Assembly (NCBI GenBank): GCA_021613535.1
Contig: CP075494.1
Location: 2,356,001-2,420,000 of the forward strand
DNA from: Adineta vaga
Taxonomy: Eukaryota > Animalia > Rotifera
DNA: 64,000 nucleotides
Direction of reading: 5' to 3'
Below the pieces are notes generated by a model. The model ran no database searches, was not told the origin of the DNA, and was given only the letters and a program-made list of their open reading frames with translations. Positions 2,321-61,525 of this stretch are shown here, piece after piece; position 1 is the stretch's first letter; each line of letters starts with the position of its first letter. The translations under genes and the position numbers were made by a program.

Positions 2321-2321
2321 A

Positions 2322-2404
2322 AGGGTGGTGTGGGTGTAGGTATGGCTGAGGTTGGTTCTCACTGTATCTTCTCCTTCATTTGACCACATTCACACCCACA
2401 CCCT
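2322..2404. repeat. Telomere-repeat palindrome, site P1
   Basis: AGGGTGGTGTGGGTGTAGG ... CACATTCACACCCACACCCT, with a long spacer containing TCTTCTC. Confidence 0.8.
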
Positions 2405-2987
2405 CTTTTTTCTTTAGTGATCTTATCACATTTATGATCTCTCGACAAATGAAAGAGCTGCAGGAAAAGATCTCAACGCAGTTTTAAAATAAAAGATGGC
2501 GTTAGGTATCGCATATCATATAGCATATCATAAATCTAGATATTTGAGAAAAACAAAGCATTACATTTTCCATATATTTGATCATTTACTTTTCATAGAT
2601 TAAAATCATTGAGTTTAATCATACATTATTCTATTATTTTGTCAGAATGCAATTGTAGGATTAGGATTAGACTAAATTAAAATTTACATCCACGGTCCTT
2701 ACACACATTCTGTACACTAGAAGAATAAGAATATTTAGTATGGTTGAACTAATTATTGGAATTACAAGATATTCTATCTCACAGAAAAATGATTATCAAT
2801 ACTTTTTATCGTTTATTATCATCTTGTATTGGTTATTTAGTTTTAAATAATATTATTTTCTATCATTACTTCTAGGAAAAGAATTTATTCTGGAAAATAA
2901 AAGTTTTCGAAGTGTATTGGTCATTTATAGTGATGATTTATTGAATTCTAAACAGAAAAAAACAAGAAGAAATTATGAAAATGACAA

Positions 2988-3043
2988 TGAACGAGTGTGA
3001 GATGGATGTATTTCCTTCTTTCTCACCCACACCCACACGCTCA
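2988..3043. repeat. Telomere-repeat palindrome, site P2
   Basis: TGAACGAGTGTGAGATGGATGTA-TTTCCTTCTTTC-TCACCCACACCCACACGCTCA. Confidence 0.75.
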
Positions 3044-3347
3044 ACGATAGTATTGTGCAATACCATTGGCATATCAGAATTTCACTGGCATAACCAAGAT
3101 CATTCAACGGCGTGCGTTTTAATTTCTGAAAAATCATAACACAATTACTCAAATTTTTGCGTTGTTAAGGAAAAAGGGTATTCAACTACACAATACATTT
3201 GAATGCAAATAAATATTTAGAGATAGTTTCTTACTATGACACTGAATAACATAACATAAACAAAATAATCTTTTACAATTACACGTTTTTTCTTCCTTTT
3301 TTGAACCGTTAACGACAATAAACTGATTTATCTATGATTGAGATACA

Positions 3348-4217
3348 TTAATTTATTGTCCGAATAGGTAATACTTGCATTTTTCGACGTTGAAAATAAG
3401 TTTGTATAATTTTTCGTATTTCTCGATCTAGTAAAATATTACATGCTATCGCAAGTGTAACAGAGAATGTTTGACAAACTAGATGCGCATAGTACAGTAT
3501 AATATTAGAATAAGTTGATAATATTATATTTGGTAATCCAGTAATAACACCAATACTAATTATGATCATTACATTTCGAACAAGTTTTGGATCACGATTT
3601 TGATTTTGAAGTGAATTATTCAGTGTAACTGCATTTCGTCTTGTTTTATGAACTTGATATATAATGTAAATATGAATGAAAATGACTACTATAATAGGTG
3701 CAACTAAGTTAATAATTAGAAGATAAAGACTAATAAGGTCATATTCTGTTTTTAACCAACAAATAGTTCTCGGATAGAAATCAACTGTGTCTAATACAAT
3801 GACAGGTGATGTTATGATAAATATCACTAACCATTGAATTAATATTAACGTATAATGTGTTCGAAATGTTCTTAACCATTGATATTTCATTGATAAAATA
3901 GAAAAAAAGAATCGAGATATTGCTTGAATCGTATATGAATGCATTACTAATCCGATTGAAGTATAGGTAAAATAAGAACGAAATCGACAAGTAAGATTAC
4001 TTGTATCCCAAGAAATAAAAAGAGCATAAGTATAATTAATAATATAAACAACTGAAAAAATCATTGATGCAAATGCTGTATTACAGATAAGTAAATGATT
4101 AACTGTATGTAAACGTGATTTTGTTCGATAAACTAAGATTAAAGTAAATAGACCAATGATTATACAAATGATTCCAAATATTGATGAGAACAAGGCTGCT
4201 ATTTCAAAAGGATCCAT
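3348..4217 (-). CDS. Orphan rhodopsin-like 7TM GPCR
   Basis: 289-aa intronless ORF with 7 hydrophobic segments, LICN in TM2, CRFR...QAISRFF in TM3 and an LDREIR tail. Same family as 348-1319. Confidence 0.8.
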   Translation of the reverse strand: MDPFEIAALFSSIFGIICIIIGLFTLILVYRTKSRLHTVNHLLICNTAFASMIFSVVYIINYTYALFISWDTSNLTCRFRSYFTYTSIGLVMHSYTIQAISRFFFSILSMKYQWLRTFRTHYTLILIQWLVIFIITSPVIVLDTVDFYPRTICWLKTEYDLISLYLLIINLVAPIIVVIFIHIYIIYQVHKTRRNAVTLNNSLQNQNRDPKLVRNVMIIISIGVITGLPNIILSTYSNIILYYAHLVCQTFSVTLAIACNILLDREIRKIIQTYFQRRKMQVLPIRTIN

Positions 4218-4471
4218 GTCAAAAATGAAGATAAATTAATTAAAGTGAAATGAGAAATATTTATATAGAGGGACATGCTGAAAAGCGACATTATCTAACT
4301 TAAGCATGAATTATATAAACGAGACTAATTTAAGTTCTATATTAGGAAAGAATGTTTAAGAAGACGTATTACATCTTATTTTTTACTTTCTTTCTAGTAA
4401 AAATATCAACAAGATACAAAAGAAAAATTATATTTTGTTTTTGGTATTCTTCTCAACCTCCACCATGGAGA

Positions 4472-4492
4472 TCGCTAACACCAACACCCTTA
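4472..4492. repeat. Half-site P3 (C-rich arm only)
   Basis: TCGCTAACACCAACACCCTTA. Its reverse complement TAAGGGTGTTGGTGTTAGCGA nearly matches the left arm plus spacer start of P16 (AAGGGTGTGGGTGTTAGCGG). Confidence 0.55.
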
Positions 4493-4699
4493 TTAAAGAT
4501 ACATGTCGAATGTCATATACATGGTGGATCTTAATAACAAAAATTAAGATTAAAGTACAAACCACTCAAATTCTCACCCTGAATGTGAAAAATGAAATTT
4601 GATTCATAACAATGTAGTGATTTGTTGAAAAGAAAAAGAAGACAGGGCTAAAATTTTCTACCTTGGTGTAAAACTTTAAAGTGATCACCGACACAGATG

Positions 4700-5520
4700 A
4701 TACTTTATCTGAATTGTGAACACCTGTTTCTTGAGTAACTGTGGGTAACAAACATCTAAATGAATGGTCATTCAGTACATTGAAAATATAATATAAAGTT
4801 CTTTTACCGTAAATACAATCGAAACCAACGAAGTTTAGCTGTATCACCAATTTGCATTAATCGCCAATAGTCCTTAAAATGAAATCAAATTTATTTATCG
4901 TATGGAATTAATAATATTCGCCCTGAAATTATATACTTCTATTAGTTCTTCTAATCGCTTATTAAGATCTTCAGTCGATTCTATTGAACATAAATGATAT
5001 GGACTCATATAATGATAAAGTATGGTATCAGAATCCAGTGATCCATTAGGAATATTTGGTTCAATATTTCGTACATATTGTGGTTCGAATTCTTGATCGA
5101 AATAAACTAAAGCTAATTCTGGAGTTTCTAAGAATTCACGAAACCAGTTGGATGTATTTATATTGTATCGCTGACCTTTGACATTCAATTTTCTGTATAG
5201 AAAAAAATAGAGATTGTTACTGATGTTCAATTTCTATTAGCACAAACTCAATTTCGATGATGTCCATTGGTAATGAACTATATGAAATGACTAAGGTTGG
5301 CATTCCGGGTGCATCAACTTGAAGATTCGATAGTAATAGATTTGATGGAAGCGCTAGGCCATGAGGAGTTGTTTGTGCTTCATCCACTTTAATAGAAGCA
5401 CACGATTTTATCGGATAAATAAGTAACTCTCGAATCACAATAGATGATGCTGCTGTTACCATTGAAACTTATTAACAAAACAAAAATTAAAACCGATAGA
5501 ATGGGTAGATAATCAGATAC
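4700..5520 (-). pseudogene. Degenerate MOSC-domain (mARC-like) gene
   Basis: IRELLIYPIKSC (MOSC_N), SPYHLCSIESTEDLNKRL...YNFRANII and RCLLPTVTQETG (MOSC C-terminal Cys motif) lie in different frames. Some breaks are not explained by introns. Boundaries are approximate. Confidence 0.7.
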
Positions 5521-5883
5521 TCGTGATAGGTCGTATAGAATCTTAGAGCAATAGCTTACATGAAAGTACGAAATCATACGAAAGACGATATGAAAAATCA
5601 TTGTTTCAAACAAGTATGATTTTTTTAATCATTTGTAGTACTTACCTGATAAACAATGATACTGAAGTTTAAATATCTTAAGGATAGCAGGAACATAGTT
5701 ACGACAAAGTCTATTGCAACTCATCACTATTGATTAAAACAAAGATTCTCTGTGTCATTCATGTCGAAAAAAGTCGTTGCATGATGTTGAATATGATGCA
5801 AGATCCAATGTCACACATATTCACGGTGAAAAAAAACAAATTCATTTCTTCATTATTGTGAATCTTATTTCATTTATCAAAAT

Positions 5884-7932
5884 TTAAAAAAAATATAAAA
5901 ACTCAACAAGAAAAATAAGAATGAAATTTGTGTGGAATTTATTGGATACATTGATGATTGGTTCAATATCGGTCATATTGATTCCCCAATAATTTGTTGT
6001 TGAATTCGCAAACACAGTGTATAATGTTTGATTAATAACTGGATCTGTATAAAACCAATCGATTCCAATCAAATTTTCTTTCAAACTACATGTATAATTC
6101 AAGGTATCTAAATCGACTTTTAATTCTTGTTGATATAAATATTGAAGAATGATTTGTTCTGTACATGTTGCCGAATGAAAACTACCTTGTTTCGTATAGG
6201 ATTGAACGGCAGTAACATGTGCTAAACCTTTCATTTGAACTAATTTTGTTCGAATTGATTTCATTTGAAATAATTTTTCAACTTGTTGTGCTGTGGACAA
6301 TGGAGAATTATAATCTAAATCACCGTTAAATAATAAAACACCAGTTCGTTGGGACCGAAATGATTTTTGATTAACTTCAAATTTTCCCCAATAATTTGGA
6401 TTTCTTTCGTATAGAACATCTTTCAGAGCGGTTGGTAATGTATAATTATACGTTGATAGTTGTGTTTCATCACAGAATGGAACAGGACCGGCTCGTGCCA
6501 AATTATATCTATTGACTACGCTACTACCTATACAAAAATCATTATAAAATTTAGCATTTGTTTTGATAGTTTCGTTGATGTCGAAGCCTATGAAATCACT
6601 CCAAATTGTTAAACTTAAAACATTTCCATCATTTGGATATTGTTGTGGTGGATCAATGAAACGTTGGCCTATGGCTTGTTGAGCGATACTAATCATAATG
6701 GGCAATGCTCGAGTGAAGACTCGTTGATCTTCAACTGAACAACGATAGAGACGAGCAATTAATATAGCTGTTAGTGGACGAACATTCATTAATTCTATGC
6801 CTTGATTTCCAATAAGAATAAATAAATCCCAACTGTTCAATCCTAGATTAGTTGAACAAAGAGGATTTATCAATTTTGTTTCGAAAAGTATTTGTAATGT
6901 TAATGCGACACTGATTATATCTTGATTTGTTCCAGTAACAAGACTAAATGCTTTTGAACATAATAGATCTTGTTGACATGTTGATAAGTATAAATAAAAT
7001 CGATGATTTAAATTATTCACTTGATTCCGAAATACATCGGAATCTTTTATGGACATAACTCCATCCAGAATAATTCCATCGATGACTTGAATGTGTGATT
7101 TTATTGATTGAATCGTTAAGTATGTTTCAATAATGCCAGTGCCTAAATTTTCAATTAAAATCAACAATCAATGAATAACCAGACTTCGTATGACCAAAAT
7201 AAAAATCTTGTTCGTTTTTATTTCTGAGAAGTGACTATATCATCTTTCAAGTTGTGACTTACCTTGACTCAATCCATAAATATAAGTCGACGTGGAGTTT
7301 GTTGATTGTGATTGATTTATCGCATATTGAATTTGATATTGTAAATCTTGTGCAATATTTGCATTGTTCATTGCATGTATTATTTTCAATGATTGATCAG
7401 GTGAAGATGGTACTGTGGTTGCAATTAATTCTCGAGCGCAATCAGTCCAACTAGTTGCTGTATAACAATGAATCGATGGTTTACTCAATCCTGCTCCTCG
7501 ATATTGAAATAAATACATTATTGGATGTGTATTCGTATAAATCTTATGATAATTATTTAGAACAATTTCTTTTAGCATAGTTATACCAAATTGTTCCATA
7601 CCATATTGTGAACCACCACCCCCGTTAACAAGCCAATAATTAATAATATGTTCTGAAAATGAATTATTGACCGGTGGGAGTGACGATATAAATACACGTT
7701 TCACATGTAAATCTGTTAGTGGAATTTCTTTAGTTGAATTATAATATTGACTATCAAATGTACTTGGATTGAATTGATTCCATTCTAGTGGACTTGTTAA
7801 ATACATACATTCAGCTTGTATTGTCACATTGTCTGATATCGTTTTTAGCAATGATCCATCATTGAATGGGCATGAATACCAACTGATGGTTATGGAACAG
7901 AAGTTTAATAGTAGGAATAATTGATTCTTCAT
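5884..7932 (-). CDS. Secreted alpha/beta hydrolase (TAP-like peptidase family), 2 exons (7932-7263, 7142-5884)
   Basis: Signal peptide, NGGGG oxyanion loop, GLSQG nucleophile elbow completed across a GT-AG intron (CAAG|gtaagt...tttag|GC), GDLD acid, AH His and a hydrophobic C-terminus. Confidence 0.75.
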
Positions 7933-8336
7933 TTGTTATTTGTACGATCTGTTTGTGAAAAGAAACGAAACAAAATGAAAAATTTCGTATATCTATTGTT
8001 AGTTTGTGTTGAATACTCTTCAAAACAAACTTCGATACTACTAATAGATATCAGGCGACTCTGCGCACATTTATTTCGACAGGTCTGATATGTTATCAAA
8101 CAAAAGAAAGAAAAAAAGAAAGAAAGAGAAGTAAAAGGAGAAATATAGTGCGCATTAACGAATCTTTTATAAAACAAGATTAGAATACACATCTATGCAG
8201 CTATCTAATATGTCAAATATTTGTCGAACAACCATTTAAAAGCTCTATAAATATTTATTCTTCGATTTCACATTAAATCTATATTATGAAAGCGTCAGCT
8301 TTGAGCTGTTTGTCCTGATTAAGTATAATAAAAATC

Positions 8337-8401
8337 TAGGATGAGGATCCGTTCTTCATCCACACTTTCACTCCTACCCACACTCACACTCACACCCTCA
8401 A
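8337..8401. repeat. Telomere-repeat palindrome, site P4 (short G arm, long C arm)
   Basis: AGGATGAGGAT-CCGTTCTT-CATCCA CACTTT CACTCC TACCCA CACTCA CACTCA CACCCTCAA: about 7 degenerate hexamers. Confidence 0.7.
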
Positions 8402-8529
8402 GACACAGATTCTGATGCAATTAAGCAAAAACATAGTCATTAGCTAGTCAATATAAACGTTCGAGTTCGTGAAGACTATATACTGTTGTATCCTCTACAC
8501 ATAACATTACTTGGCGTGCTTTTTGAAGA

Positions 8530-9675
8530 CTAACAAAATATACAGATCTTATTTGATACATTTGATGAAGTTCCATTTACGGGCGCAAGATCATTCGGTG
8601 TTACATAGATCCAATTTTTATCGGCCGTAACTATAAGATTATTTTCTATCTGTTCCATCACGTAACGATCTTTCATCTGATTAATTAACGTCAGATAGGC
8701 ATCTTTTCGATTCACCCAGAGACGAACTGTACCTCGCTGATGATTATAAGCATGGAACATCATATAGCTATCGCTGGTGGGCGTATCACCTGCGACGATA
8801 ATCGGCATTTTCCACTGATTTATATAGGTTAAAATAGCGGCGTACTTTCCGGCGAACGCCGTTTGCGGAGACCACAGAGAGGAAGTGAATTTTAAGTTTA
8901 AATTTTTCTCCTGATCGTAAGTATTGTCTTCAATCGCTTTTCGAGATATCGTCAATTGAGTATTATTTCTTAGCAGCGTAGATATTCCAATAATATTCTG
9001 CGGCTTAACATTATAACCATACTTTGAATCACTGAGAACCATTCGTATTAATTCCTCGTGTGAAGCTGTAATTATATAGACTTCAATTCCATTCGACATA
9101 AGACTATTAAAGAGTTCTTGTTGAGCTCTGTAAAAATTTGGTATAGGCGCATTGTACTCAGTCTGTATAATAGAGTTATTATTTGATGTGGTCAACATAG
9201 TTTTGATTGTTGTATTACCAGTGTTCGATTGCAACATTTCATCAACATAGGTTTTGAGTTCGTTGAGAGTCATTCCAGAGAAGGCTTGTGCAATCCAATT
9301 ATAGCAGATAATATCATCGAGCACAGTACAAAGACGATAATAGTAAGAGAAGAGACTTTCTCTATGTTTTTCTGTATCTATAAATGGAATGAGTTTTAGT
9401 GCTTGATCAAGATTTTCACGGTTTAACACGTTTTTCATTTCGAGATAAGCAAATGTTGATTCCTCCAAATCCCATTGATATGTTGTTTGATCAGAATCGA
9501 AACAGGCATAGGAACCACTATGTGCATTACTTATGATCACTTCTTCCAGTTTTTCAGCTATTCTCGTTGGCCAGGCATTAAGATTGACACGGGATAGAGA
9601 TCGTTTCACGGGTAGTGTATTAACATCGACAATTAGCCAGTATAAGAAAAGAAATAATGAAAAAAGTTTGGTCAT
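8530..9675 (-). CDS. Secreted HAD-family phosphorylcholine phosphatase (PchP-like), candidate horizontal acquisition
   Basis: Signal peptide, HAD motif I YACFDSDQTTY, ESLFSYYYRLC, motif II YIITAS and motif IV AGDTPTSD. These resemble Pseudomonas and fungal phosphorylcholine phosphatases. Intronless. Confidence 0.8.
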   Translation of the reverse strand: MTKLFSLFLFLYWLIVDVNTLPVKRSLSRVNLNAWPTRIAEKLEEVIISNAHSGSYACFDSDQTTYQWDLEESTFAYLEMKNVLNRENLDQALKLIPFIDTEKHRESLFSYYYRLCTVLDDIICYNWIAQAFSGMTLNELKTYVDEMLQSNTGNTTIKTMLTTSNNNSIIQTEYNAPIPNFYRAQQELFNSLMSNGIEVYIITASHEELIRMVLSDSKYGYNVKPQNIIGISTLLRNNTQLTISRKAIEDNTYDQEKNLNLKFTSSLWSPQTAFAGKYAAILTYINQWKMPIIVAGDTPTSDSYMMFHAYNHQRGTVRLWVNRKDAYLTLINQMKDRYVMEQIENNLIVTADKNWIYVTPNDLAPVNGTSSNVSNKICIFC

Positions 9676-10061
9676 TTTCTTTTCGTTGTTTAACCAATGT
9701 AAATATTATTTACTTAGGAATCTAAAAATTGCATATAGTATTTTTTTAAATTAAGCGTAAAAAACACATATTTTTATGACTTAATAAACTTACCGTTAAT
9801 AGGATCTTCGTAATAAAAACATGTACGAAATCAACGAGTCATTGAAGATAATATCCTTTCAATATGCATATGCACTCGTTGTAATAAGAATATGTACAAA
9901 TCAGCAGACCGTAGAAGATAACGTGCTTTCGATGAATCATGAAATATAATGTAATTTGAATGCGTACTGCGATCGTTTTTTTTCGATAGTGTTAAGGTTT
10001 GTCCAGTGCAGTTTCAGCTTTATTGTCTTATTGAAGAAAATACATGCGTTGAATAGAGTAA

Positions 10062-10079
10062 TACACCTACACCCTCAAG
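10062..10079. repeat. Half-site P5 (C-rich arm)
   Basis: TACACCTACACCCTCAAG; the left arm is not recognisable. Confidence 0.55.
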
Positions 10080-10559
10080 ATTTTATTCAAATTTTTCACG
10101 AAATAAGTTATTATTCACATGATACATCGATGAGATAAAAGAGAATTATTCATATTTTAAATGAATGACTAAACAAACAAATTTTTTTCTATGAACAATA
10201 CGTATATTTATTTCTTGCTGTCGTTTGTGAATTTGTGCGTTAAGAACATTTTCCATCGATTCAAAGTGAATCGAGCAAGACAAGCGACAAGAGAAAAAGC
10301 GCTGACATAATGGAACCTATTGCTTGCAGCAAAATATTCTTTAAAAAGAAAGCTATGATCTGTATACTAGCTCACTAGTTATGTTTGTTCTACTTTGATG
10401 TTGATGGTCTATAATTATTATCGGAAGAAAAACTATTTCGTTTATTCATTTATAATGAATTATTCTCGAAAATTAATAAATTTTACTCATTCACAATTTA
10501 AAATGCTTTTAAATGAGAATCCAATGGAATTTTCTTCATGTATAAAAAGAAAGATTATA

Positions 10560-10614
10560 TGGAGGTTATGGATGGGAATAATCACGAATTGTACAACACT
10601 CTCATCCACCTTCA
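10560..10614. repeat. Degenerate palindrome, site P6
   Basis: TGGAGGTTATGGATGGGAAT ... ACTCTCATCCACCTTCA; the arms remain mutually complementary. Confidence 0.45.
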
Positions 10615-11039
10615 CCGGGATATGTTTTATTCACAAAAAAATTATTGATAAAATGTTTAAAAAAGATAAGTCGCTGTTTATTAGTGGATAAGTGTATCTG
10701 ATCGATGTCGAACGAAATAAAGAATCATTGCTACCTGGAGGGACTAATCGGGACATATTTTAACTCAAAGTGTATTCAGTTTGTTCTGTATTTGAAAATC
10801 GCAAGTGATTTATCACGTATTTGAGATGACATTTCATCAGAATTCAATGCCATTTATAACAGATACAGCTATTTTATACTCTTCTGTTCGTTTTAATCTT
10901 TAACTTTGATATTTGAGAAGGTAATTGATTGATGGGAGATAGAAACCGATGTGGGGAAATCGATAACCTTTTACTAAATTAAATTTTCTTCTAAAACATA
11001 AATGCAATTCTTTAACAAGCAGCAGAATTAGTTCGAATC

Positions 11040-11963
11040 ATGGACCATCGTCGTTTACATTCTATTCTTCTCAATCTTCGACATCGTCTTACTGATAATG
11101 ATCGAAAACGTCTTCATTTCTATCTTGGTAAAGATGCTGTACGAAGAATTCAAGATCATCCAACACTTACTGGAACTCTCAATCTCATTGGATCTCTTAT
11201 TGATAAAGATAGAATTAATAATAAAGATCTCAGTTATCTTATCAACGCACTTGATGAGATTTATTGTTCTGATGCTGCAAACTTCTTACTAGGTAAATTC
11301 ATTAATTTTATTTGATAAAATGTTAACAGTCTCTATAATTAGAGTATCAAAAGCGTACGAATCAGTTCAATCAATCAATCCATAGTTTATCGAAAATTCT
11401 GCCGCCTTCTCGACAGAATCATACACAATCATGTAGGTAAACTAGTAGAATCATCCGATATTCTGATTTTATATCAACTTAAATTTAGTGGGACTCCATC
11501 GAGATGATAATAGTCATAGTGAAATAACGGGCATTTCCAAGAAAAAATTGTTGACGAAATCTTCTTTTCTATTCGTTCTGTTATGTCTTATTATAAATGG
11601 AGAATTATTATTTTTCTCTCTTTGGTGTAATATCAAGTTTCGTCAATTGGAAGACAAAAATCTTGGATTTATGGAAGTAATAAAAGAAATGGAAACAAGT
11701 CAACATGCAAATTCTATGAACTTGAATGAATCCGAGAAGAAATTGAAAATATTCGAAGGTAAGAACGTACTTAAATTTCTTCCAAAGAATAAATATCCGA
11801 ATGACTCTAAGGCTTGGCAAAAAACACAAACGATTTAAAAGAAAACATATATTTCTCGTATTTCGTAGATGATAAACATACAGTCAAATGTTTGAAAAGG
11901 AACTATGGATGTGGATTTAATCGTTTAGGTTACTCTAAAGTAGCTCACACATATTTCAAATAG
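11040..11963 (+). CDS. Death effector domain (DED) + single transmembrane + coiled-coil protein, about 4 exons
   Basis: Exon 1 has a DED-like pattern (LTDNDRKRLHFYL...LNLIGSLIDKDRINNKDLSYLINALDEI). A later exon has a TM segment (FLFVLLCLIINGELLFFSLW) then a coiled coil. GT-AG introns at about 11293, 11437 and 11759. The last exon is uncertain. Confidence 0.65.
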
Positions 11964-12289
11964 TTGGTTTTTTTTAAGACTAAATTCTATGGAACGAGTT
12001 TTCTGTAGAGAAAGAAATCCGCATGTGCGATTTACTAAAAGCTATAGATTCAAATTAACTATTTTTTGATTCAGTAAGACTAAGTAGAATTTTATTATTG
12101 TTTGAACAGTGTTGTCAAGAAATCCGGAAAATAATAATCCGGAAAAATAAAATCCGGAAAAATAAAAATTCGGAAAAGTAAAAATCTGAAGAGTGAAAAA
12201 TCAAGGAAAATTTTATTCGTAGTGTAATAGTGATAAAAGATATAATAAGTAGAAATAATGCAGATGTGAGAGACAATTTGATAAGAAGT

Positions 12290-13927: not shown

Positions 13928-14108
13928 TGTAACAAGAGGAGAGGATAAGTGGGAATCGTGGGTGTAATAGTTGACTACTAACTAGTTGGTTAGTTTCTGT
14001 TTTATCAAGTAATTCATCGCACTATATATATGGTCGTGGAACTGTGGGGGAGAGAGTGTATGAACAAGGGAAAACGAGGAGAGATAGATAGTACTAGAGA
14101 AAGAAATA

Positions 14109-14112
<4 letters not shown>

Positions 14113-14146
<34 letters not shown>
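14113..14146. repeat. (GA)n microsatellite inside the MULE 5' region
   Basis: About 17 GA units seen directly. Confidence 0.95.
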
Positions 14147-14150
<4 letters not shown>

Positions 14151-17590: not shown

Positions 17591-18137
17591 GGTTGTGAAT
17601 ATTTGGATTGGAAAACAGATACTGTTAAAACCGAGTCTCGATATCATTGATCTAGTTATCTAGTTTTCGTTTTACTTATTCGATTATTATTGAGTCTTAA
17701 TAGAAACGCTAAATGGTTTTACCGGTCGTTAGCTTTATGGCAGCTTTTTATTTTAACGTGTTCGATGAATCAGAAAATATTGAGAGAATGTAGCAAAATA
17801 TCACGTCACAAACGAAGACATGTGTGAATGAATTGGTGGAAGTTCTCGTAAAAATGCGAAAAGGACGAACGATAGTGAGAAATGTTCACAGTTGTTGTGT
17901 GATTGTGGGAGATATACACGTAAAAGGTATGGGCGAAATACTGGAAATTTTAGACGAATGTATGAAGTCAAAAATAATCGAAGTTACTATATAAAATTTA
18001 AATAATCAATTTAAAATCATACGGAAGAGTATGTGCAATATTAAATATACGGGCTGCTTTTCTTTAGTATAATATTGCTTGTCAAAGCTTTATATTTGTA
18101 TCTCTAGACAGATCAGAGTGAAGTACATCAGTGTATC

Positions 18138-18184
18138 ATGAGGGTGAGGGTGTGGGATAGTAGGACGAACACTCACACCCTCAT
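18138..18184. repeat. Telomere-repeat palindrome, site P7
   Basis: ATGAGGGTGAGGGTGTGGG-ATAGTAGGACGAA-CACTCACACCCTCAT. Confidence 0.9.
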
Positions 18185-46609: not shown

Positions 46610-46630
46610 CAGAGCATGTTACATCGGCGA

Positions 46631-49985: not shown

Positions 49986-50110
49986 TTAAGGGTGGGTGCG
50001 GGTGTGGATCTTTTTGTCTTCTCTCACCCACACCCTTGCCCATATGCACACTAATCTATACCCACCCTTCTAACATGTTTGGCACATTCTATCTAACCCA
50101 CACTCTCAAG
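49986..50110. repeat. Telomere-repeat palindrome, site P14, with two extra C-rich arms
   Basis: TTAAGGGTGGGTGCGGGTGTGGA-TCTTTTTGTCTTCTC-TCACCCACACCCTTG, then ATACCCACCCTT (about 50058-50069) and AACCCACACTCTCAAG (50095-50110). Confidence 0.85.
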
Positions 50111-50280: not shown

Positions 50281-53200
50281 TCAAATTATTCGTGGTATGA
50301 TAAATTTCAGAACTGTAACTAAACCACCAATCAATCCAAATATTGTTGTTACTATATAAATGATATCATTTCTTGTTTCATAACTATAGATACATTGTAT
50401 TGGTTTACATTCATCATAGTAATTTTCATACATTGGATAAAAATTCCATCGTTCAATCATTAAATTTTCAATAATATCTTTGATTGTAGAACTTTCGACA
50501 TATTTAGTTAGTGATGACGAATTAAGAGATTGTACTTGTATAGTTGAAGACAGTCGTACATAAGTTTGTATTTGTTGAATACACGAATCATCAAAGAAAC
50601 ATTCAAGCGTAGATTGAAGTAATGCTTCAATAGGATAACATCCTAAATAGAAATTTGGTATTGTAAACAGTTCTGTTTCAGGTCCTGCTGCATAAATAGA
50701 TAACGGTGCCTTACATTTGGCTGATTCATGACAAGAACAATTAGAATAAAAAGCTGGATATGGTCTCATATAATCATCTGAATCTGGTTCACGTAAGACA
50801 AAATTTCCCGGTAATACAGAAGCTACATTATTTATTTGAGTTGTATTACGAATGACTGCCATTGATAAAAGAAAGCTGGTTGTCAATGATGATCTAAATT
50901 GTTGAGCGAATGTCTGAGTTTGTACTTGAAATAAGTGATCGGGTGTAACAGATCGCGTAATATATTGAGTTGAATAGAATCGAATTAAATTATCAGAAAT
51001 CATTTGATTTATTACTTTACAAAACATATTCAATGATTGAAATATATACGTGCCTGTCACTCGAAAATCATATATATACGTACCGGCAGAACTTTTAGAT
51101 TCTTTAAGATACCGAATCCAATCATCGGTTACAAAGTAACTTGGCATATACGATGTAATGTATAGTTAATATAGAGAATTTCATCATAATTAGTTGCTAT
51201 TTTCGTACAAGGACATGTTAAAGTTAGGAGATATTTAGAATATAATTGCGAGTATGTTGTGAGAGAAGGTGAATAAACATGAATAGTTTTCTTAGTATGC
51301 CTCAGTGAAGTATATAAGAGTATAATTATCAACAAATAAATAAATGAGAAAATGAATAATTTTGTTGATATCCTTTGTTGTCGAAGTCGATATTGATCTG
51401 TTGTAGAGGGTACAGATGGAAACATATTTAAATTGACTGAAAACTCTTTTAACTTTTTCCATAACGCTATGATTCGTTCATAATTGATTGTTACTAAAAT
51501 GAAGAAATCAAACGAAAATTCAGTTGCTCATCAACGATAGGAGACTACCATTTTTTTATATATAGATATTCTGCTAAAGTCACTATATCATTTACTACTG
51601 AGCAATTACTATATCTCTCCGTCATACTGATAAGTTAAAAATAATTTAACTTAAGTTTTATCAGCTATACGTACCATTGATTGATCTTTGGTTTGTTCTT
51701 TTTTTTCTAATAAAGTTGACAACTTTTGGTATGATAAGTTTCAGAACTGTAACTAAACCACCAATCAATCCAAATATTGTTGTTACTATATAAATGATAT
51801 CATTTCTTGCTTCATAACTATAGATACATTGTATTGGTTTACATTCATCAAAGTAATTTTCATACATCAATGAGAAAATCCATTCTTCAATCATTAAATT
51901 TTCAATAATATCTTTGATTGTAGAACTTTCGACATATTTAGTTAGTGATGACGAATTAAGCGATGGTATCTTTATAGATGAAGATAATGCTAGATGGGGT
52001 TGTATTTGTTGAATACAAGAATCATCAAAGAAACATTCAAGAGTGGATTGAAGTAATGCTTCAATAGGATAACATCCTCTATAGAATCCTGGTACCGTAA
52101 ATACTACATTTTCGTAAGAATCTCCATAAATAGAAGAATGATCAATACTTGAGATCGACGAATCACAGCTTTGGTTAGGATAATATACACTCAACGTAGT
52201 GATTATATTCCCTCCGATGAAAAGCACAAAATTGGTCAGCGCAGCACTGTACAAAATATTGCCTTGCGTTGTGCCTCGAATCAACGAGAGAGATAATAAA
52301 AAACTTGCTATTGTTAAGGATTTGAATTCATCAGTCATTGCTTTGATTTCTGACTGAAGCGTTTCTATCGGTATAACAGATAAACTCACATATTGAGTTG
52401 AATAATATCTAATTAAATTATTAGATATTGTTTCTTTAACTAAATCACAAAATCCTTTCAGCCCTTGAAAAGCATTCATGCCTGTAAAACGAAAGTCGTA
52501 AATACTGAAATATTCCTCATAGAGCGTTCTACTAAAACTATTAATCCATTCATCAGTGATAAAATAACTCGAACATACTTGATGTATTGTATAGTTAACA
52601 GCAAGGATTTTATCATATTCAATCGATATTTTTTCACATGCACATGTTAATGTTTGTGAATATTGAGAATATAATTGTAAATATGTTGTAAGAGAAGGTG
52701 AATCGATAGTAGCAGTTTTTGTAATATTTATCAATGATGTATATAAAATGAGATTTGTTAAGGGTATTATAAGTAAAATAGTAAATAATCTTGTTGATAT
52801 GATTTCATTTCTGAGTTGGTGTGGATCAGTTGAAGGTGGTACGGATGGAAATAAATTGTAATCTTTTAGGTATTTTTTTAATTTCTTGAATAAACGAACG
52901 ATTGCTTCACGAGATGGTATGCCTACATAAAACAGAATATTCATGTTAGTATCGATGTAATATCTCATTTCAAAATGATCATAAGGATGATATTTATTTT
53001 TACGCACACTCAACATCAAATAATTGGAACTACATCAAACAGATCAATTGGTTAACACTTTGGATGATTAAATTTGTATCACATAAGAACAAAAGATAAC
53101 CAAAACTGATTTTCTATTCTCATTTTATTGATTTACGTATTGTACAAATTGGAAAGCTTTCCACCTTCTATTCTCTATGGTACATTTTATTTTCTAATAA

Positions 53201-54632
53201 GGTGTGGTAAACCATAAGATACTAGAGTGCAAAATACGACTATTCGATTCCATCTATAAGTTATTTTTCCAGGACGATCGTTGTTCTATCAACCTTTCTA
53301 TCACCTTATAATGATAAACAACAAAACTAGAAGTTCTTTTCTCACAAACATATATCAAAACACTCTTTATGTATTCCTTACCAATTTGTCGATTTTCCGC
53401 TGTTCTTTTTTTTCTAATAAAGTTGACAACTTTTGGTATGATAAGTTTCAGAACTGTAACTAAACCACCAATCAATCCAAATATTGTTGTTACTATATAA
53501 ATGATATCATTTCTTGTTTCATAACTATAGATACATTGTATTGGTTTACATTCATCAAAGTAATTTTCATACATCAATGAGAAAATCCATTCTTCAATCA
53601 TTAAATTTTCAATAATATCTTTGATTGTAGAACTTTCGACATATTTAGTTAGTGATGACGAATTAAGCGATGGTATCTTTATAGATGAAGATAATGCTAG
53701 ATGGGGTTGTATTTGTTGAATACAAGAATCATCAAAGAAACATTCAAGAGTGGATTGAAATAATGCTTCAATAGTCACGCATCCTTTATAGAAACCTGGT
53801 ACTGTAAATTGTTTTGCTAGAGCAGGATATTGATAAATAGAAGTTTCCGAGTGACATGTAGCTGTACTATCACAAAGACAGGAATCGTACCATTGTGGTT
53901 CCGGAAGTATCGTATTGCTGGGAGGTACAATGTAAAGATAATAATTTGATTGATGTACCATGAGTAAAGCATTACTATGAGTTGTACTTCGGATGAGTGA
54001 AATAGATTCGATAAATTTTGTTTTAACGGATCGTTTGAACTGTTCAGTAAATGTTTCAATTTGTGACTGTAATAAATCAATCGGTATAACAGATACACTA
54101 ATATATTGAGTTAAATAAAATTCAATTAAATTACTAGACATTGTCTCTTTAACTAAATGACAAAATTCTTTCAGTCCTTGAAAAGCATACAAGCCTATGA
54201 AGCGAAAGTCGATATTAGCCATCGTTCTATAGAGTTTCGGCCGAAAGTTACCAATCCATTCATCAGTGATAAAATAACTCGAACATACTTGATGTATTGT
54301 ATAGTTAACAGCAAGGATTTTATCATATTCAATCGATATTTTTTCACATGCACATGTTAATGTTTGTGAATATTGAGAATATAATTGTAAATATGTTGTA
54401 AGAGAAGGTGAATCAAAAGTAGTAGTTTTTGTAATATTTATCAATGATGTATATAAAATGAGATTTGTTAAGGGTAGTATAAGTAAAATAATAAATAATC
54501 TTGTTGATATGATTTCATTTCTGAGTTGATGTGGATCAGTTGAAGGTGGTACGGATGGAAATAAATTATAATTTTTTAAGTATTTTTTTAATTTTTTCGA
54601 AAATTTATTTATAATTCTAAACGTGTTTTCCA
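50281..54632 (-). pseudogene. Gene of three tandem module-exons (same cysteine-rich membrane module family), 5' end missing or decayed, one frameshift
   Basis: Exons at about 54632-53381, 52922-51676 and 51493-50281 with phase-compatible GT-AG introns. Each encodes NLFPS...STRLF-TM-CxC...HQVCSS...STLECFF...CKPIQCIY-TM. Frameshift at about 51145. A possible decayed fourth unit lies at about 55787-56100. Confidence 0.7.
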
Positions 54633-56199
54633 CTAAAAAATCAATTAGAAATATGATATATTTATCAACTGAATATCTTAACTTTTCTATTATCTTAATG
54701 TGAAATAGTTATGCAAATGTAGTTAAAAGTCTCAATTTCAGTTTTGTTCACAAAAGTGAATCAATAATGAATGTCGACAGTCGTGAAACAAGGAATTACT
54801 TTAACGATGGTATAACAGAAAGATATTTTCCTGCCCGTACATTGGAAAATAGAAATCTTTTGTTTTGCATATGAAATTTTATAAACAAAAGAATCGCGGG
54901 GAATTTGTATAAATAATACTTACTAACTATTGAACGAAATGAATGCAATAAATGCAATTATTTGATAAATGTGTGTATACTGTTGGTCGTTATTATCCAA
55001 TTGCTAAAATTTCAATAAAAACTGGATCTAAAGCTTAAAAATAATTTGTTTTTAATTCTATAATATAAATGAAAGTTATGTTTTTTGAAGATTGTTTTAC
55101 ACGATAGTTATATGAGTTTCCACAGACTTTACTAAGTTAACTCTATCTATTAAAATATATTGTCTAATACTTTCATTTTGAATATGCACAATAATCATTA
55201 AAATGCTAATAAGAAAAATATTATTTTCTACAGGAAAAACTCAACAAATTCTAAGTGTACTAGAAATAAAATATGCTATTTACTCTTTTTGTCAAATTGT
55301 TTTACTGTTTACACTGCTGCATAGCTGACAAACTTGCAAAATGAACACAATCATTCATAAAGAAGATTGGATATGGATTAACTGTAAAAGATTGATGTAT
55401 TGGATAAAATCATTATGATTCAAGTCTATTAATTACTGGTACAAAGAAAGGAAATTCTGTCATTAAATGTACAATACGCTTCGAAATGTAGGAGAGTTGA
55501 CTAGTATAAAAATTAAAATAGTTCGGCTTGAATTTTCAGTTTAACAGTATAGTCGAAAAATGATTCATCATATTTGTATAAGCAACAAATGAATAATATA
55601 AATAAAAACTAGGAAAGATTGATTGTTTAAAAAAGTATGTTCTTACTAGTTTTTACAAGAGAGTATTTATTTTTTTTATGAATGATTATTATACCGTGGG
55701 TGTATCATGCCTAAAAAAAATTACATTCTATTTATCATTTTACAGGACCACATATAATTAAAATAAAAAGAGGAAACAATGAGTACCAGATTTTCTATTC
55801 GTTATATTCTCATATAGATTTAACAGCCTGTTAATTATTTTTAAAACAACAATATGATAATCATTTTTACTGATTATACAATTGAGATAGATAAGAAAAA
55901 TACTAAAATATTTAGCATTACGATATATATATATATATAAAGATTTCATTATGTTTGGCAGACAATTTTTGTTTACTATTATAAAAAATAAATAGTTTCA
56001 TATTTTTTTCCAATATTTGTTATATCAAAAGAAATTTAAGACAGAACGTAGTTCAGAAAGAAAAGTTCGTAGAGGAACTTAATTTATGTGAAGTCTTTTA
56101 CAAAGAAATTTAATTTTCAGTGGTCATACAGTTTTAAAGTGTTCTCTAAAATCCAGCTTGAACTGTTTGAATCATTGAATTTTGACAATGGACAAAAGA

Positions 56200-58435: not shown

Positions 58436-58829
58436 CTTCTTCACAATAAATTGTCGAAAATGCTACTTTCCAGTCAATTGTTAGTATATTTTTGTCTATA
58501 GAGTAAACTTGCATCTGTCAGTCATATTCAAAGCAGATGTTCAACTTTATATCTAAACTTTCATCATATAAGTAGATTGCACAACACCCTTGCAATATCT
58601 ACGATTCTTCTTTTCTTTTATACATGAATACCTTGCATTTTCATTCGTTTCTTTTATCTTGACTCAAGAGAAACAGATAAGGAAAGAATTTCATTACATT
58701 AATATAAATGTTTATATCTTCAGGATCTAACTTGCTGTCGTCATCTGAAAATAACTAGGTGCTTCTATTAATTTAAAACGTTAGACACAAATATCAGAAA
58801 GAGACAGTGATACCAAAACAGCATATAGC

Positions 58830-59420
58830 ATGAATAGTTCATATACTATAAGCAAAGGGAATGTTGAAGTAACAGATGTGACAAGATCGGCCGAGAATTT
58901 TGTAGGTGATACTCTTATGACCAGGCAACAAAAATTAATCTTAAACGAGTTTTACGGTAAATGCGATCAATCTTGGCAACTGATTTACAAAGCTACGAGA
59001 GATGGATTTGATGCCGCTTCATTTCATCGTCTCTGCACAAATCAAGGACCGACAATGACACTTGTTCAGTCAACAACTAACTGTCTGTTTGGTGGATATG
59101 CTTCAAAGAGTTGGCAATCTTCTTCAGGCTTTGTAGATGCTTCGGAATCATTTCTTTATCTGTTGACCAATGCAAATGGAAATCAACCGACAAAATTTCC
59201 TTATAATAATGATGGAAAAGCATTGTACAATTGCTATTCATACGGACCCATATTTGGTGAAGGAGCTGACTTGTATATCAGTAGCCGAAGTAATATATAT
59301 CTTTGTAGTTATTGTAATTTAGGTGTTAGCTATGTTAACTCACTTGATCTTGGCGTAAATACCTACACTGGCTCACAATTCTTTCAAACCAATGAAATTG
59401 AAATTTTCAAATTATCTTAA
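58830..59420 (+). CDS. TLDc-domain protein
   Basis: WQLIYKATRDGF...FHRLCTNQGPT...FGGY...SFLY...YGPIFG...DL...EIEIF. Confidence 0.9.
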   Translation: MNSSYTISKGNVEVTDVTRSAENFVGDTLMTRQQKLILNEFYGKCDQSWQLIYKATRDGFDAASFHRLCTNQGPTMTLVQSTTNCLFGGYASKSWQSSSGFVDASESFLYLLTNANGNQPTKFPYNNDGKALYNCYSYGPIFGEGADLYISSRSNIYLCSYCNLGVSYVNSLDLGVNTYTGSQFFQTNEIEIFKLS

Positions 59421-60189
59421 TCGTTGACAGAGACTTAAAATAAAAACTCTTATTTGCAGTCAGTTTTGTGAGAAACTCTGTTGTCTGTAGAAATTCAAGT
59501 TCGAACTATATTCGAATCGATGGATAAACTAGAATGAGCAGATGATGTACCAATATCAAAATATATTGAAATTGAGATAATATGAATAAATCAACATTGA
59601 CTACTAGTAGTTTCAAGACTAGACTTGATACATATGGATGCTTATAAATATTCAATATCGACTGAATAGAATTCAGAACATGTAAGAAAAAAGTATCGCA
59701 ACAAATGTGTAGAAAGGTGAGTAACTTTTCGATGAATATAGAAAAAGGATACATGATGATGATAAAGCATTTAATCTAGAAGATATGACAAATACAATTT
59801 TCAAGGATATACTTATGGTCCTATTCCCTTAGATCTTTAACGATGTCTCTTTGTATACCAATTGCGAAAAAATGTTAATTAAAGATTGAAAAAACTTCCA
59901 ACCAATGTATAAAATTATTTCATTTAAAATATGAGTAGTTGGTTTTGATAAACAATAATTATATTGTCAGTAAATCGAATATTAAGTAATGTAAGACGGA
60001 ATCGATTATTCCAAGTGACGATGGAATCATTATCGGATCCACGATATGACCAAAATTGATCAGTCGTATGATTTATTAGATAAATTCAATGTTTTTTATT
60101 CGAAAACTATGTTGGGCAGAAGTAAAACGCATTATTCACTGCAGAATAACATCGCTTTTTATATTTAGTGAAAATAAAAATTCGAAAGA

Positions 60190-61353
60190 AAAAAAGAAAT
60201 TTTATCAATTTGAGAATTAGTTTTAACTTGTCGAACAGTAAATAAAACAAAAGGTAATAGAAGTACTTCATGTTCATTGTCAAATTCCGAGATGTGTGGC
60301 ATATTATTCGATAGTTTTGATAAATCAATTGCAGAATCACAATAATCAGGAAAATTAAAAACCAACAATACACTTTTTCTTCGAGTTATTGATCGAGGCG
60401 CTGCTCCAAACGCCATGGCGACCTTTGGATCTTTTGAAGTTGACCAAAATGTTTTTGATCAAATTGTACCATGATATTTTAAAGACCATCGATATGCGTA
60501 TATACTGTGTTCGGTTATTCTGACACCGCGATAACATGTACCTCGAAAATGACGCCCCTTGAGTTTATCTAATGATAGTAGTAGACTGCTATACAATGCC
60601 ATAGTAATATAAAAAGGTGTTTGAAGTGTATATAAACGTATTGACTGTTCAATTTCATCATCTATTAAACCCTTTTTTGCGAACAATGTGCATTTTTTAT
60701 ATTGTTTATGATTTGTGGTAACATAGTGGTCAATTATTTTATTAAGAGTATCGAGTAATTGTCTTCTATCTGCTATTTTACCAAATAATTTTAATTGCAA
60801 GCAAGTATTAAATAGGCGTAGGATTTGTTGCATTTCTTTAGTATTTGAATTTGAGCAACCTTCCAACCAACGATCACCCTTAAATACTTCATTTACATCA
60901 CTATCATCATAATCATCACCATCATCAATTTGATCATTATTGTTTTCGACGTTCGTTTCAAATTTATTAGATTCATTCCGCATAGATTTGTCATCACAGA
61001 AACGATTAATACCTCCAGGACGATAAAATAATTCACGAATTTTTTCTGTTTGCGCTTCTTCATAAGCTGTTAAACCATGGCAATTAATCTGATGTCGTAA
61101 ACAATCATATTCAATTAATAGCAAACGAATGATTTCAGTATGCCCATAGTACGTTGCAGCTTGAAGTGGAGTACTCCCATTACTTTCTATATGATTTAAA
61201 TCTTCAAAAGAGATACAATTCAATAGTTCTTTCACTCGTTGAATATCACCATTTCGACATGTCCAATAAAATTCACTTACTTTACCTGTAGAAAGAAATA
61301 TTGAAAAAACATTCTATTGTTCATTCAAAATACTTTTCAATCTTACTCGCCAT
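60190..61353 (-). pseudogene. Ankyrin-repeat + R-S-E type ADP-ribosyltransferase gene with an in-frame TGA
   Basis: Micro-exon ATGGCGA|gtaag at 61353, ankyrin (FYWTCRNGD, GSTPLQAATYYGH), RLYT, CYRG, WSTS and ENEHEVL-type EHEVL. TGA at 60459-60461 lies between YRG and STS in one frame. The 3' end is approximate. Confidence 0.8.
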
Positions 61354-61469
61354 AAGTAATATATATCGTCTATTCTGATCGAACACAGTATAGATTTTAC
61401 AAGTTCTTCTCGTATTTAAAACCGTGAAATATGAGTACGAAAATCGCTTAATCCTTAACTGATAAAAAA

Positions 61470-61525
61470 AGGGTGTGGGTGTTAGCGGATAAGATTCATA
61501 CCCTCTCGCTCTCCGACACCCTCAA
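61470..61525. repeat. Telomere-repeat palindrome, site P16
   Basis: AGGGTGTGGGTGT-TAGCGGATAAGATT-CATACCCTCTCGCTCTCCGACACCCTCAA. Confidence 0.8.

Follow-up and report, generated by a model that had tools for sequence, protein, structure and literature searches.

The 64,000-nucleotide window of the Adineta vaga genome analyzed here (contig 5, 2.36-2.42 Mb; the genome comprises 100.8 Mb in 6 contigs) contains 16 palindromic sites, each composed of a G-rich telomeric tract, a non-telomeric linker of ~10-42 nt and a C-rich tract. The sites are located at breakpoints between DNA segments of unrelated origin. The explanation that we favor, with somewhat better than even confidence, is that free DNA ends were healed by reverse-transcriptase-templated synthesis and joined head to head, leaving the palindromes as scars that mark the junctions of a subtelomeric mosaic.

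Distribution of the palindromic sites

The arm GGGTGTGGGTG occurred 23 times in the window when one mismatch was allowed, compared to 0.13 occurrences expected from shuffled sequences. All 16 palindromes of the original prediction were recovered at positions that agree with our mapping (Table 1). Most of the half-sites it had listed proved to be full sites with a decayed or very short G arm. Sites 18142 and 23480 are crossed without gaps in independent public runs of 2013 and 2022, so these are not assembly artefacts; neither an empty-site allele nor a newly formed one was seen.

Table 1. Palindromic sites and the captured fragment, in window coordinates.
Feature	Position	Approximate mapped position	Strand	Composition
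P1	2322-2407	2322		G tract 2323-2348, 42-nt linker, C tract 2391-2405
P2	2996-3044	3000		G tract GAGATGGATG, decayed; linker rich in pyrimidines; C tract 3024-3040, then TCAA
P3	4462-4494	4470		..GATCGCTAA, linker-like, and short C tract; G tract not recognizable
P4	8340-8404	8340		G tract GATGAGGAT, decayed; linker; C tract with CCCTCAAG at its end
P5	10046-10082	10050		Short C tract, outer leader CCCTCAAGAT
P6	18137-18186	18139		G tract, family D linker ATAGTAGGACGAACA, 12-nt C tract
P7	21429-21488	21430		Leader CTTGAC, G tract, family A linker TTAAGACTATAGCA, C tract followed by TTAAG
P8a	23370-23428	23373		G tract, 22-nt family E linker, C tract ending in CCTCAA
Captured fragment	23427-23494		+	Copy of helicase-gene sequence 29706-29773, between P8a and P8b
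P8b	23470-23531	23472		G-rich end of gene origin with AGGGT, linker of 18 nt, C tract, then TTGA
P9	31270-31302	31272		Leader ATCTTGAGG, G tract of only GG, linker of 9 nt, C tract of 10 nt, then TTAA
P10	42084-42134	42088		11-nt G tract, 20-nt pyrimidine-rich linker (C-like family), C tract
P11	46543-46612	46548		G tract, 20-nt linker, long and decayed C tract
P12	49986-50038	49990		G tract, pyrimidine-rich linker (17 nt), C tract (exactly 11 nt)
P12b	50039-50110	50039-50110		Two more linker and C-tract units in direct order (..CTAATCTAT-ACCCACCC and ..CATTCTATCTAA-CCCACAC..TCAAG), resembling family B; G tract nearly absent
P13	58387-58437	58390		Leader TTGA, G tract, family D linker AACTAGTAGGACATACAT, short C tract
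P14	61464-61527	61470		11-nt G tract, fixed register before TTAGCGGATAAG.., long decayed C tract ending in CCCTCAAG

As had been claimed, the sites avoid intact coding sequences: none of the 16 lay within a stop-to-stop ORF of at least 120 aa, with such ORFs covering 59% of the window (P ~5e-7). The proposed spacing of one site per ~4 kb was likewise borne out, as ~35 sites were found in the surrounding 154 kb (~1 per 4.4 kb). By comparison, two weak arm matches were found in a 70-kb mid-chromosome sample and none in the 40 kb at the contig start. Window genes use both strands, and sites were found in tandem, convergent and divergent gene-end settings, the latter at P7 and P13; P10 lies 17 bp beyond the stop codon of ORF 42149-43180.

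The predicted order, with the G arm preceding the C arm, held wherever both arms were visible. Genome-wide, perfect-arm copies with 5-35 nt between the arms were arranged G-then-C in 386 cases compared to 3 in the C-then-G order, which served as the reversed control; the palindrome is present at hundreds of sites at least. Directly abutting arms (0-4 nt apart) were found at no site in the genome.

Segment boundaries at the palindromes

The original prediction had asked whether breaks in synteny coincide with the sites, and we found that homology blocks end at the palindrome edges 2408 and 18141. At the left edge of P1 an AAA-ATPase pseudogene is truncated, with AAA profile positions 22-64 beginning at ~2335, and the 627-bp segment starting at its right edge (2408-3034) has a 90% identical copy at 4.275 Mb of contig 5. 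The block 10452-18141 is duplicated on contigs 1 and 5; P5 is its left limit within ~380 bp, and paralog homology stops at 18141, one base ahead of P6. Only these two block edges (2408 and 18141) are base-exact, the remaining ones lying 120-380 bp from sites, where diverged paralogs give no finer resolution.

The captured fragment of ~68 bp between P8a and P8b matches the helicase gene at 92% over 50 bp (E 1.7e-12), and the alignment extends to ~23494. Its G-rich end supplies most of what had been taken for the G arm of P8b, which is largely gene-derived sequence. Paralogs of the helicase gene itself (83% and 76% identity) carried no sites. Furthermore, the closest paralogs of the intervals are scattered over unrelated genome positions, with different loci for each interval. 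Target-site duplications, as an ordinary MITE would leave, were not observed: the best flanking repeat averaged 2.66 nt, compared to 3.26 nt in mismatched controls.

Structure of arms and linkers

Within a site, the length and sequence of one arm do not depend on those of the other. The arm lengths are uncorrelated (rho -0.07), and arms of the same site are no more complementary to each other (0.72) than arms of different sites (0.74). Every tract has its outer edge in a single register, between A and GGG, and in front of it there often stands a portion of a constant leader, (C)ATCTTGA. The leader is graded: GA is commoner than TTGA, and TTGA commoner than ATCTTGA. Leader-like ends of this kind were seen at both outer sides of palindromes. 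From this edge the tracts grow inward in 6-nt steps (11, 17, 23 nt). On one side the tract enters the linker, a non-telomeric tail of defined family and length, in fixed register; the opposite tract is independent and usually longer and more irregular, with a length asymmetry that is not significant at the 10 loci compared (P 0.06 and 0.11). Arms decay freely among the window sites, and copies with identical linkers have arms from 9 to >40 nt. Hairpin or cruciform potential was detected at 4 of 5 sites (z -2.5 to -4.6), and the P6 hairpin has a predicted energy of -11.3 kcal/mol.

The linkers form recurrent sequence families, with 13 pairs in the 154 kb scoring at least 18 compared to 0.96 in shuffles; the family E linker of P8a, for instance, recurs at -22808 and 72561 in window coordinates. 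Family B comprises 99 copies when up to 2 mismatches are allowed (52 forward and 47 reverse), most of them within a few Mb of contig ends. All 42 copies of its exact core are preceded by a G tract, with no G-free stretch in that position in any of them. The tract beside ..CTAA measures 11 nt (7 of 21 copies), 17-18 nt, 20-23 nt or more and ends outward in CCC followed by T; the arrangement "tail, 11 nt, TCAAGA" was found in 19 copies. In sub-family B1 the second tract joins the tail through 3-4 hypervariable bases flanked by constant stretches on both sides, while in at least 13 copies of sub-family B2 (..GTTAGTATTACATC..) both linker junctions are in fixed register. Family F comprises 9 copies, each followed by a C tract. 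All inspected copies of families B and F with visible flanks lie within palindromes, and copies of one linker family have neither flank in common.

Origin of the palindromes

The suggestion that the sites are scars of telomere-capped fragments ligated into arrays fits best with the scattered paralogs, the exact block edges, the cut pseudogene and the flanked 68-bp fragment. Consistent with the proposed signature of end-to-end fusion, the order is G-then-C, as in head-to-head telomere fusion relics such as human 2q13. Plain telomere-telomere fusion is nevertheless insufficient, because no arms abut and the linkers fall into recurrent families: fusion relics are single, long, abutting arrays, whereas here tracts of 10-40 nt occur at hundreds of sites at least, always with a templated linker between them.

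In the scheme that we favor, two free DNA ends would each be extended by a telomerase-type reverse transcriptase and then joined. The template would be a putative RNA, 5'-tail, CACCCACACCC, UCAAGAUG-3', used either by telomerase reading beyond its boundary or by an Athena-type enzyme. A raw DNA end would align at the leader region and be extended across one or more repeats, and run-off synthesis through the tail would leave a 3' end that is neither telomeric nor capped. A second end, capped with telomere repeats, could then pair with or abut it through its G overhang, which would prime the second strand, giving a G tract, linker and C tract. Repeated on chromosome ends and loose fragments, such events would assemble a subtelomeric mosaic of segments the size of genes, stumps of pseudogenes and very small fragments, with the sites arising as by-products of repair or capture rather than serving in recombination. 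No source RNA or gene for the template was found; all inspected B and F tails with visible flanks sit in palindromes, and no exact "tail, 11 nt, TCAAGA" source locus exists.

In bdelloids, short interstitial (TGTGGG)n repeats of subtelomeres have been read as footprints of end healing and Athena/Terminon attachment and lie, like the sites here, in gene-poor, transposon-rich and foreign-gene-rich regions (PMC7943196, PMC8494291, PMC11258130, PMC2861651). Hexamer and subtelomeric enrichment are common to both, but these papers count hexamers and contain no description of obligatory head-to-head pairs whose linkers fall into families; the 2007 PNAS, 2008 Science or 2017 Terminon papers may hold an earlier account of such pairs. 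Breakpoints in A. vaga have been proposed to carry neotelomere scars (PMC13564844). Inverted junctions and self-priming are known for Penelope-like elements (PMC8557442, PMC3846280), and those deficient in endonuclease start synthesis at exposed ends or breaks and have (ACACCC)n 3' ends (PMC3846280, PMC6431247). Athena and Terminon elements, which belong to this group, attach to G-rich ends by a tail and (ACACCC)n 3' end, and at a genuine hammerhead-bearing Terminon 3' junction (L022) the leader and C-tract junction are identical to those at the palindromes. Terminon tails downstream of the hammerhead cleavage site (12-32 nt) are also similar in length to the linkers (~10-40 nt). However, the standard Athena model yields tracts in direct orientation (C..C in element sense), whereas those here are inverted (386 to 3), and the sites have no hammerhead, reverse-transcriptase ORF or element body. 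An origin of the linkers as hammerhead-cleaved Terminon tails found no support: they had no significant similarity to 17 such tails, hammerheads were absent upstream of family B or C cores and from the 154 kb, and the single Terminon tail tested forms no palindromes.

A clearly less probable explanation is that each palindrome is a tiny non-autonomous retroelement. Its putative RNA would be a hairpin running from leader through G tract, linker and C tract to a second leader, with a 3' end resembling that of Athena/Terminon; an Athena-type reverse transcriptase would copy it onto free ends in one pass, repeat slippage making the arms variable. This would account for the invariable presence of the linker, the confinement of inspected B and F linkers to palindromes with no other source locus found, the leader-like ends on each outer side and the sub-families with diagnostic changes; for the double fixed register of B2, copying of a whole palindromic template fits equally well as a two-end join. 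The absence of target duplications is likewise expected when priming occurs at free ends. What speaks against it is the independence of same-site arms, the tendency of the arm distal to the fixed junction to be longer and irregular, and the hypervariable B1 junction tetranucleotide between constant stretches.

In yeast and plants, telomere-like boxes serve as regulatory sites. It is improbable that the palindromes are likewise functional cis-elements, paired sites for a telomere-repeat-binding (Myb/Rap1-like) protein acting as insulators, boundaries or nucleation points of subtelomeric silencing and kept intergenic by selection. Their strictly intergenic location, their frequency of about one per gene or gene pair and their potential hairpins or cruciforms would suit such a role, but close paralogs of the same genes lack sites and all gene-end configurations occur, which argues against a required regulatory function. 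Furthermore, sites are essentially missing both from the 70 kb sampled in the chromosome core and from the 40 kb at the start of the contig, their arms decay freely, and they coincide with truncated pseudogenes and homology breakpoints. A secondary, co-opted regulatory role may exist.

We regard as very unlikely a view of the sites as DNA transposons of the miniature inverted-repeat or foldback type, whose inverted ends resemble telomeres and whose transposase lies elsewhere in the genome. In its favor are the inverted ends sharing an outer motif (TTGAGGG..CCCTCAA) that is conserved, a copy number of at least hundreds and linker families resembling transposon sub-families, but target-site duplications are absent, arm length varies despite identical linkers, paralog flanks are not contiguous and genes are cut at the edges. 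The intervals, which have the end polarity of a small linear chromosome, resemble the ciliate telomere-bearing elements Oxytricha TBE1 and Tetrahymena Tel-1 in starting with the C strand and ending with the G strand; those, however, are fixed-sequence transposons with their own transposase and target duplications, whereas the intervals are unrelated host segments.

Least likely by our estimate is an integron-like or other site-specific system in which a recombinase excises and inserts gene cassettes at attC-like palindromes, since the shared layout of imperfect palindromes separating unrelated genes, and the two duplicated blocks that end exactly at sites, are set against genes on both strands, arms of widely varying and independent length, no fixed core beyond the telomeric repeats, no evidence of excision, close paralogs without sites, linker-family copies with neither flank in common and, as had been predicted, no recombinase or integrase in the window (Pfam scan of 30 of 33 ORFs of at least 120 aa); the intervals also include pseudogene stumps and the 68-bp fragment.

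Distribution and arm order of the sites

The palindromes are a real and genome-wide feature of Adineta vaga. In this genome of 100.8 Mb and six contigs (GC ~30%), the arm GGGTGTGGGTG was found, at up to one mismatch, 23 times in the window (contig 5, positions 2,356,001-2,420,000) versus 0.13 expected matches, and clustering of the arm matches reproduced the list of palindromic sites in the original prediction. Each site consists of a G-rich telomeric tract (the G arm), a non-telomeric linker and a C-rich tract (the C arm). About 35 sites were present in the 154 kb centred on the window. A mid-contig sample of 70 kb gave two weak arm matches, and the first 40 kb of contig 5 gave none.

As had been proposed, the G arm precedes the C arm at every two-armed site in the window, and the same order prevailed throughout the genome. 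Genome-wide pattern counts, which are lower bounds, gave 386 perfect 11-mer pairs in G-then-C order at a spacing of 5-35 nt versus 3 in the exactly opposite arm order, which served as the reversed-pattern control. At a spacing of 36-66 nt the corresponding counts were 314 versus 4, most of these pairs belonging to the sites already counted at 5-35 nt, with longer arms. In addition, ~290 kb of sequence was read directly. The claim that the sites lie outside coding sequence was also upheld: none of the window's 16 sites falls within an ORF of at least 120 aa, and ORFs of this size together cover 59% of the window (P about 5e-7).

The sites at 18142 and 23480 are bridged by contigs that were assembled from independent 2013 and 2022 runs; one such contig differs at 13 bases and has zero gaps. 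Because these contigs cross the sites without a gap, the sites are real and common to the haplotypes or strains that were sampled. The assembled contigs of four runs, covering 5.9 kb, contained no allelic empty site, and a single metagenome scan for sites in other species returned two GC-rich contigs only, both of them chance matches.

Structure of arms and linkers

The arms have the characteristics expected of repeat-addition synthesis. In family B, a recurrent group of linkers in which the stretch before the C tract (the tail) ends in ..CTAA, the tract adjoining this end measured 11 nt in 7 of 21 copies and 17-18, 20-23 or more nucleotides in the others, that is, 11 nt plus multiples of 6, and its outer end was invariably CCC followed by T in the 21 copies. 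The order tail, 11 nt, TCAAGA was found in 19 family-B copies. At the outer edge of tracts we observed a graded leader, GA being commoner than TTGA and TTGA commoner than (C)ATCTTGA, and tracts started in the register A|GGG. These features agree with de novo telomere addition, in which repeats would begin at a break, in a register set by the template and with short homology to the template flank. Arm lengths within a site were uncorrelated (rho -0.07), complementarity between arms was no higher within a site than between sites, and arm-length asymmetry in ten loci amounted to a trend only. Hairpin replication and a selected stem were rejected on this independence of same-site arms.

The linkers are not random filler. 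A linker separates the arms at every site, and the whole genome holds 0 perfect arm pairs at a spacing of 0-4 nt, which suggests that capped tracts do not fuse. The original prediction had offered scars of telomere-capped fragments ligated into arrays as one reading; the G-then-C order is shared with telomere-telomere fusion relics, and the directly abutting arrays or random filler of such relics are not. Family B, consisting of the core CTACATCTATCTAA plus CACCCACACCC, is present in 99 copies genome-wide at up to two mismatches (52 on one strand, 47 on the other), lying mostly in the few Mb nearest the contig ends (for contig 5, 19 of 24 copies in the first 3.7 Mb). Its downstream junction, ..CTAA followed by CACCCACACCC, is fixed, and a G tract lies upstream in 42 of 42 exact-core copies and in 10 of 10 loci read. 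A source gene for family B was rejected, as all 42 exact copies sit within palindromes and no copy with a G-free (C-tract) upstream stretch was found genome-wide. A polarity along the chromosome was likewise rejected, with 10 forward and 9 reverse copies of the family on the left arm of contig 5.

Further recurrent families are characterised by TTAAGAGTATAG.., ..GAGTGAAGAAGATATA and ATAGTAGGAC.. linkers. A 22-nt linker family occurs three times within the 154 kb, a 40-nt family has nine copies, and 13 linker pairs within the 154 kb scored at least 18 versus 0.96 in shuffles. The 3-4 bases that separate the upstream tract from the core differ among copies of sub-family B1, in which the stretches on either side are constant; sub-family B2 (..GTTAGTATTACATC..) has fixed junctions on both sides of the linker. 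At 50039-50110 of the window, two consecutive linker-plus-C-tract units have the same (direct) orientation, an arrangement that is rare. Most of the sites originally described as half-sites do have a linker, and their G tract is decayed or very short.

Segments separated by the sites

By Pfam, the ORFs of the window encode rhodopsin-type receptors, a TPR protein, a helicase-IBR-PARP-WWE giant, a PKD1-like protein and TLDc and ankyrin proteins, together with one weak LPMO match and several products without a Pfam match. DNA searches of positions 1-17600 and 17600-31600 against the genome placed the closest relatives of each interval at differing locations (see the table), and no paralogous block crossed any site in the searches of 1-31600.

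Features of the window and their relatives elsewhere in the genome
Feature	Window position	Strand	Content	Relatives
Interval	2408-3034			contig 5, 4.275 Mb (90%)
Receptor	3351-4420			contigs 6 and 3
Interval	5972-7883			contigs 6 and 1
Single collinear block	10452-18141			contig 1 (two copies); contig 5, 3.24 Mb
Insertion, 2.5 kb	12096-14588		~90-nt terminal inverted regions of AATCCGGAAAAATAAA-like sub-repeats; ORF with FLYWCH zinc finger	at least five other copies (91-97% identity)
Interval	19844-21049			contig 1
Helicase gene	23669-30372	minus	two long ORFs: DEAD/Helicase_C, IBR, PARP-like and WWE domains	contig 5, 3.42 Mb (83%; 1 Mb away); contig 1 (76%)
PKD1-like gene	31652-39225	minus	several ORFs: NHL, REJ, GPS, PLAT, polycystin domain, PKD channel	diverged relative (63-80%) ~65 kb downstream, window coordinates 99929-102922
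Three tandem paralogous ORFs	50281-54633	minus	no Pfam match; 72-98% identity in parts	

Two block edges match sites to the base: position 2408 is the first base past P1, the site at 2322..2407, and 18141 is the last base ahead of the site at 18142. Furthermore, the AAA domain of a pseudogene starts at profile position 22, at the left edge of P1, and the truncated gene and the block edges coincide with tract starts. We found no target-site duplication, the best flanking direct repeat averaging 2.66 nt versus 3.26 nt in mismatched controls. Ten loci with identical family-B linkers have neither flank in common, on which ground break-induced replication of a linker plus its flank was rejected. 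The three tandem ORFs have no palindrome between them, and a site is therefore not present at every gene boundary; no sites were found within 1.5 kb of the helicase paralogs.

A copy of helicase-gene sequence 29706-29773 sits between two sites at 23.4 kb, and the G-rich end of this captured fragment replaces most of the next site's G arm. TTGAGGGTTGGG is present within the helicase gene itself (29746-29760), and its captured copy (23472-23494) occupies the position of a G arm; with a native G-rich stretch in this position, the telomere-like sequence inside the fragment may itself have served directly as the joining end.

Neither the contig 1 nor the contig 5 paralogous blocks contain the insertion listed in the table, which probably represents a young DNA transposon with no relation to the palindromes. 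The flanks of the window, at -8034 to -6784, 88776-90474 and 103219-109211, contain a tandem array whose units measure ~140 bp, plus two inverted duplications of recent origin (97-98.5% identity).

Origin of the palindromes and comparison with known systems

We lean towards reading the palindromes as reverse-transcriptase-templated junction scars of a subtelomeric mosaic. In the inferred sequence of steps, a telomerase-type reverse transcriptase would extend each of two DNA ends before these are joined head to head. On the fixed-register side, one continuous copy would have been made of an RNA ordered tail, short C-rich template, leader, giving in succession part of the leader, repeats of 11 nt plus multiples of 6 nt, and the tail, and the opposite side would be an ordinary short, irregular telomeric tract joined where the copy ends. 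Capped tracts would be non-fusing, and a tract would become joinable only once synthesis runs off into the tail.

A broader bdelloid end-joining route based on reverse transcription is possible, though rather unlikely. Small RNAs made of tail, CACCCACACCC and UCAAGAUG would enable any free end to be healed by telomerase or an Athena-type enzyme; run-off into the tail would make the healed end joinable exclusively to a telomeric G overhang; and loose fragments, foreign DNA included, would thereby be stitched onto chromosome ends to build subtelomeric mosaics. Arm lengths and linker family would then form a readable and datable barcode at each junction, and the shared leader and register would reveal the template region of the bdelloid telomerase RNA. 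To our knowledge, no telomerase RNA is known for Adineta vaga. The search for a unique locus combining tail, template and leader gave none, and an exact tail, 11 nt, TCAAGA locus is absent.

Should the palindromes be junction scars that follow a fixed grammar of leader, quantised tract, family-specific linker and second tract, every past join could be located and oriented, which would bear on the assembly of the gene-rich, foreign-gene-rich bdelloid subtelomeres and on the rejoining of shattered bdelloid chromosomes after desiccation or irradiation, and the grammar would predict the template of the telomerase RNA along with the sequence flanking it. If they are merely a known by-product of Athena, their value would be less, yet they would still be precise segment-boundary markers that hexamer counts miss.

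The main rival, unlikely in our judgement, is a self-copying hairpin mini-retroelement. It stays a serious one because both linker junctions are fixed in sub-family B2.

Short telomeric-repeat stretches have long been recognised in the subtelomeres of bdelloids, where studies record them as hexamer counts (PMC7943196, PMC8494291, PMC11258130, PMC2861651); they have repeat, location and junction grammar in common with the palindromes. No description of the G-linker-C architecture was found in the literature covered, outside of which lie the 2007 PNAS, 2008 Science and 2017 Terminon papers. Penelope-like elements that lack an endonuclease are described as priming at breaks or exposed ends, with (ACACCC)n or (TCACCC)n downstream of a hammerhead; telomerase caps their truncated 5' ends, and host genes are captured between units (PMC6431247, PMC3846280). 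Inverted junctions formed by Penelope-like elements have been described (PMC8557442), and scars of neotelomeres have been suggested at breakpoints in A. vaga (PMC13564844).

Athena/Terminon elements, which belong to this class, resemble the palindromes at the 3' end, where a short tail leads into (ACACCC)n, itself joined in register to a G tract, as in family B; in L022, a Terminon 3' junction, the C tract and TCAAGAT leader are identical to those of the palindromes. However, these elements have a hammerhead directly upstream of the tail whereas the palindromes have none, and the truncated 5' end of a standard Athena is capped by same-orientation repeats whereas the palindromes have inverted order. 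Throughout the genome, the cores of families B and C were without an upstream hammerhead, with matches at control level; the motif was likewise not found in the 154 kb, and Rfam gave no matches on the window. Linkers as hammerhead-cleaved Terminon tails were rejected, since local alignment of 30 linkers with 17 tails gave none above shuffles (all P >=0.19), as was the Terminon tail ..AGAATGCTTTACT as a linker, which never follows a G tract despite four hammerhead copies.

Fusion relics are large and their arrays abut directly, whereas the palindromes are small with an obligatory linker; MITEs and foldback transposons have target-site duplications, whereas the palindromes have none and their arms are independent. 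The suggested integron-like cassette system was not supported: palindromes differ from integrons in nearly all defining features, Pfam scans of 30 of the window's 33 ORFs of at least 120 aa found no recombinase, genes lie on both strands rather than co-oriented, and the sites have no conserved core, sharing only telomeric repeats of variable length.

Across contigs 1-6 we observed ~35 hammerhead-ribozyme 3' ends (CTGANGA..CGAAA..), mostly near contig ends and including L022 and a second locus, L021, each with a 12-32 nt tail followed by a C-rich telomeric tract. These are presumably Athena/Terminon 3' ends. Two of them score just below the Rfam Hammerhead_1 threshold (33.6 and 31.6 versus 34 bits).
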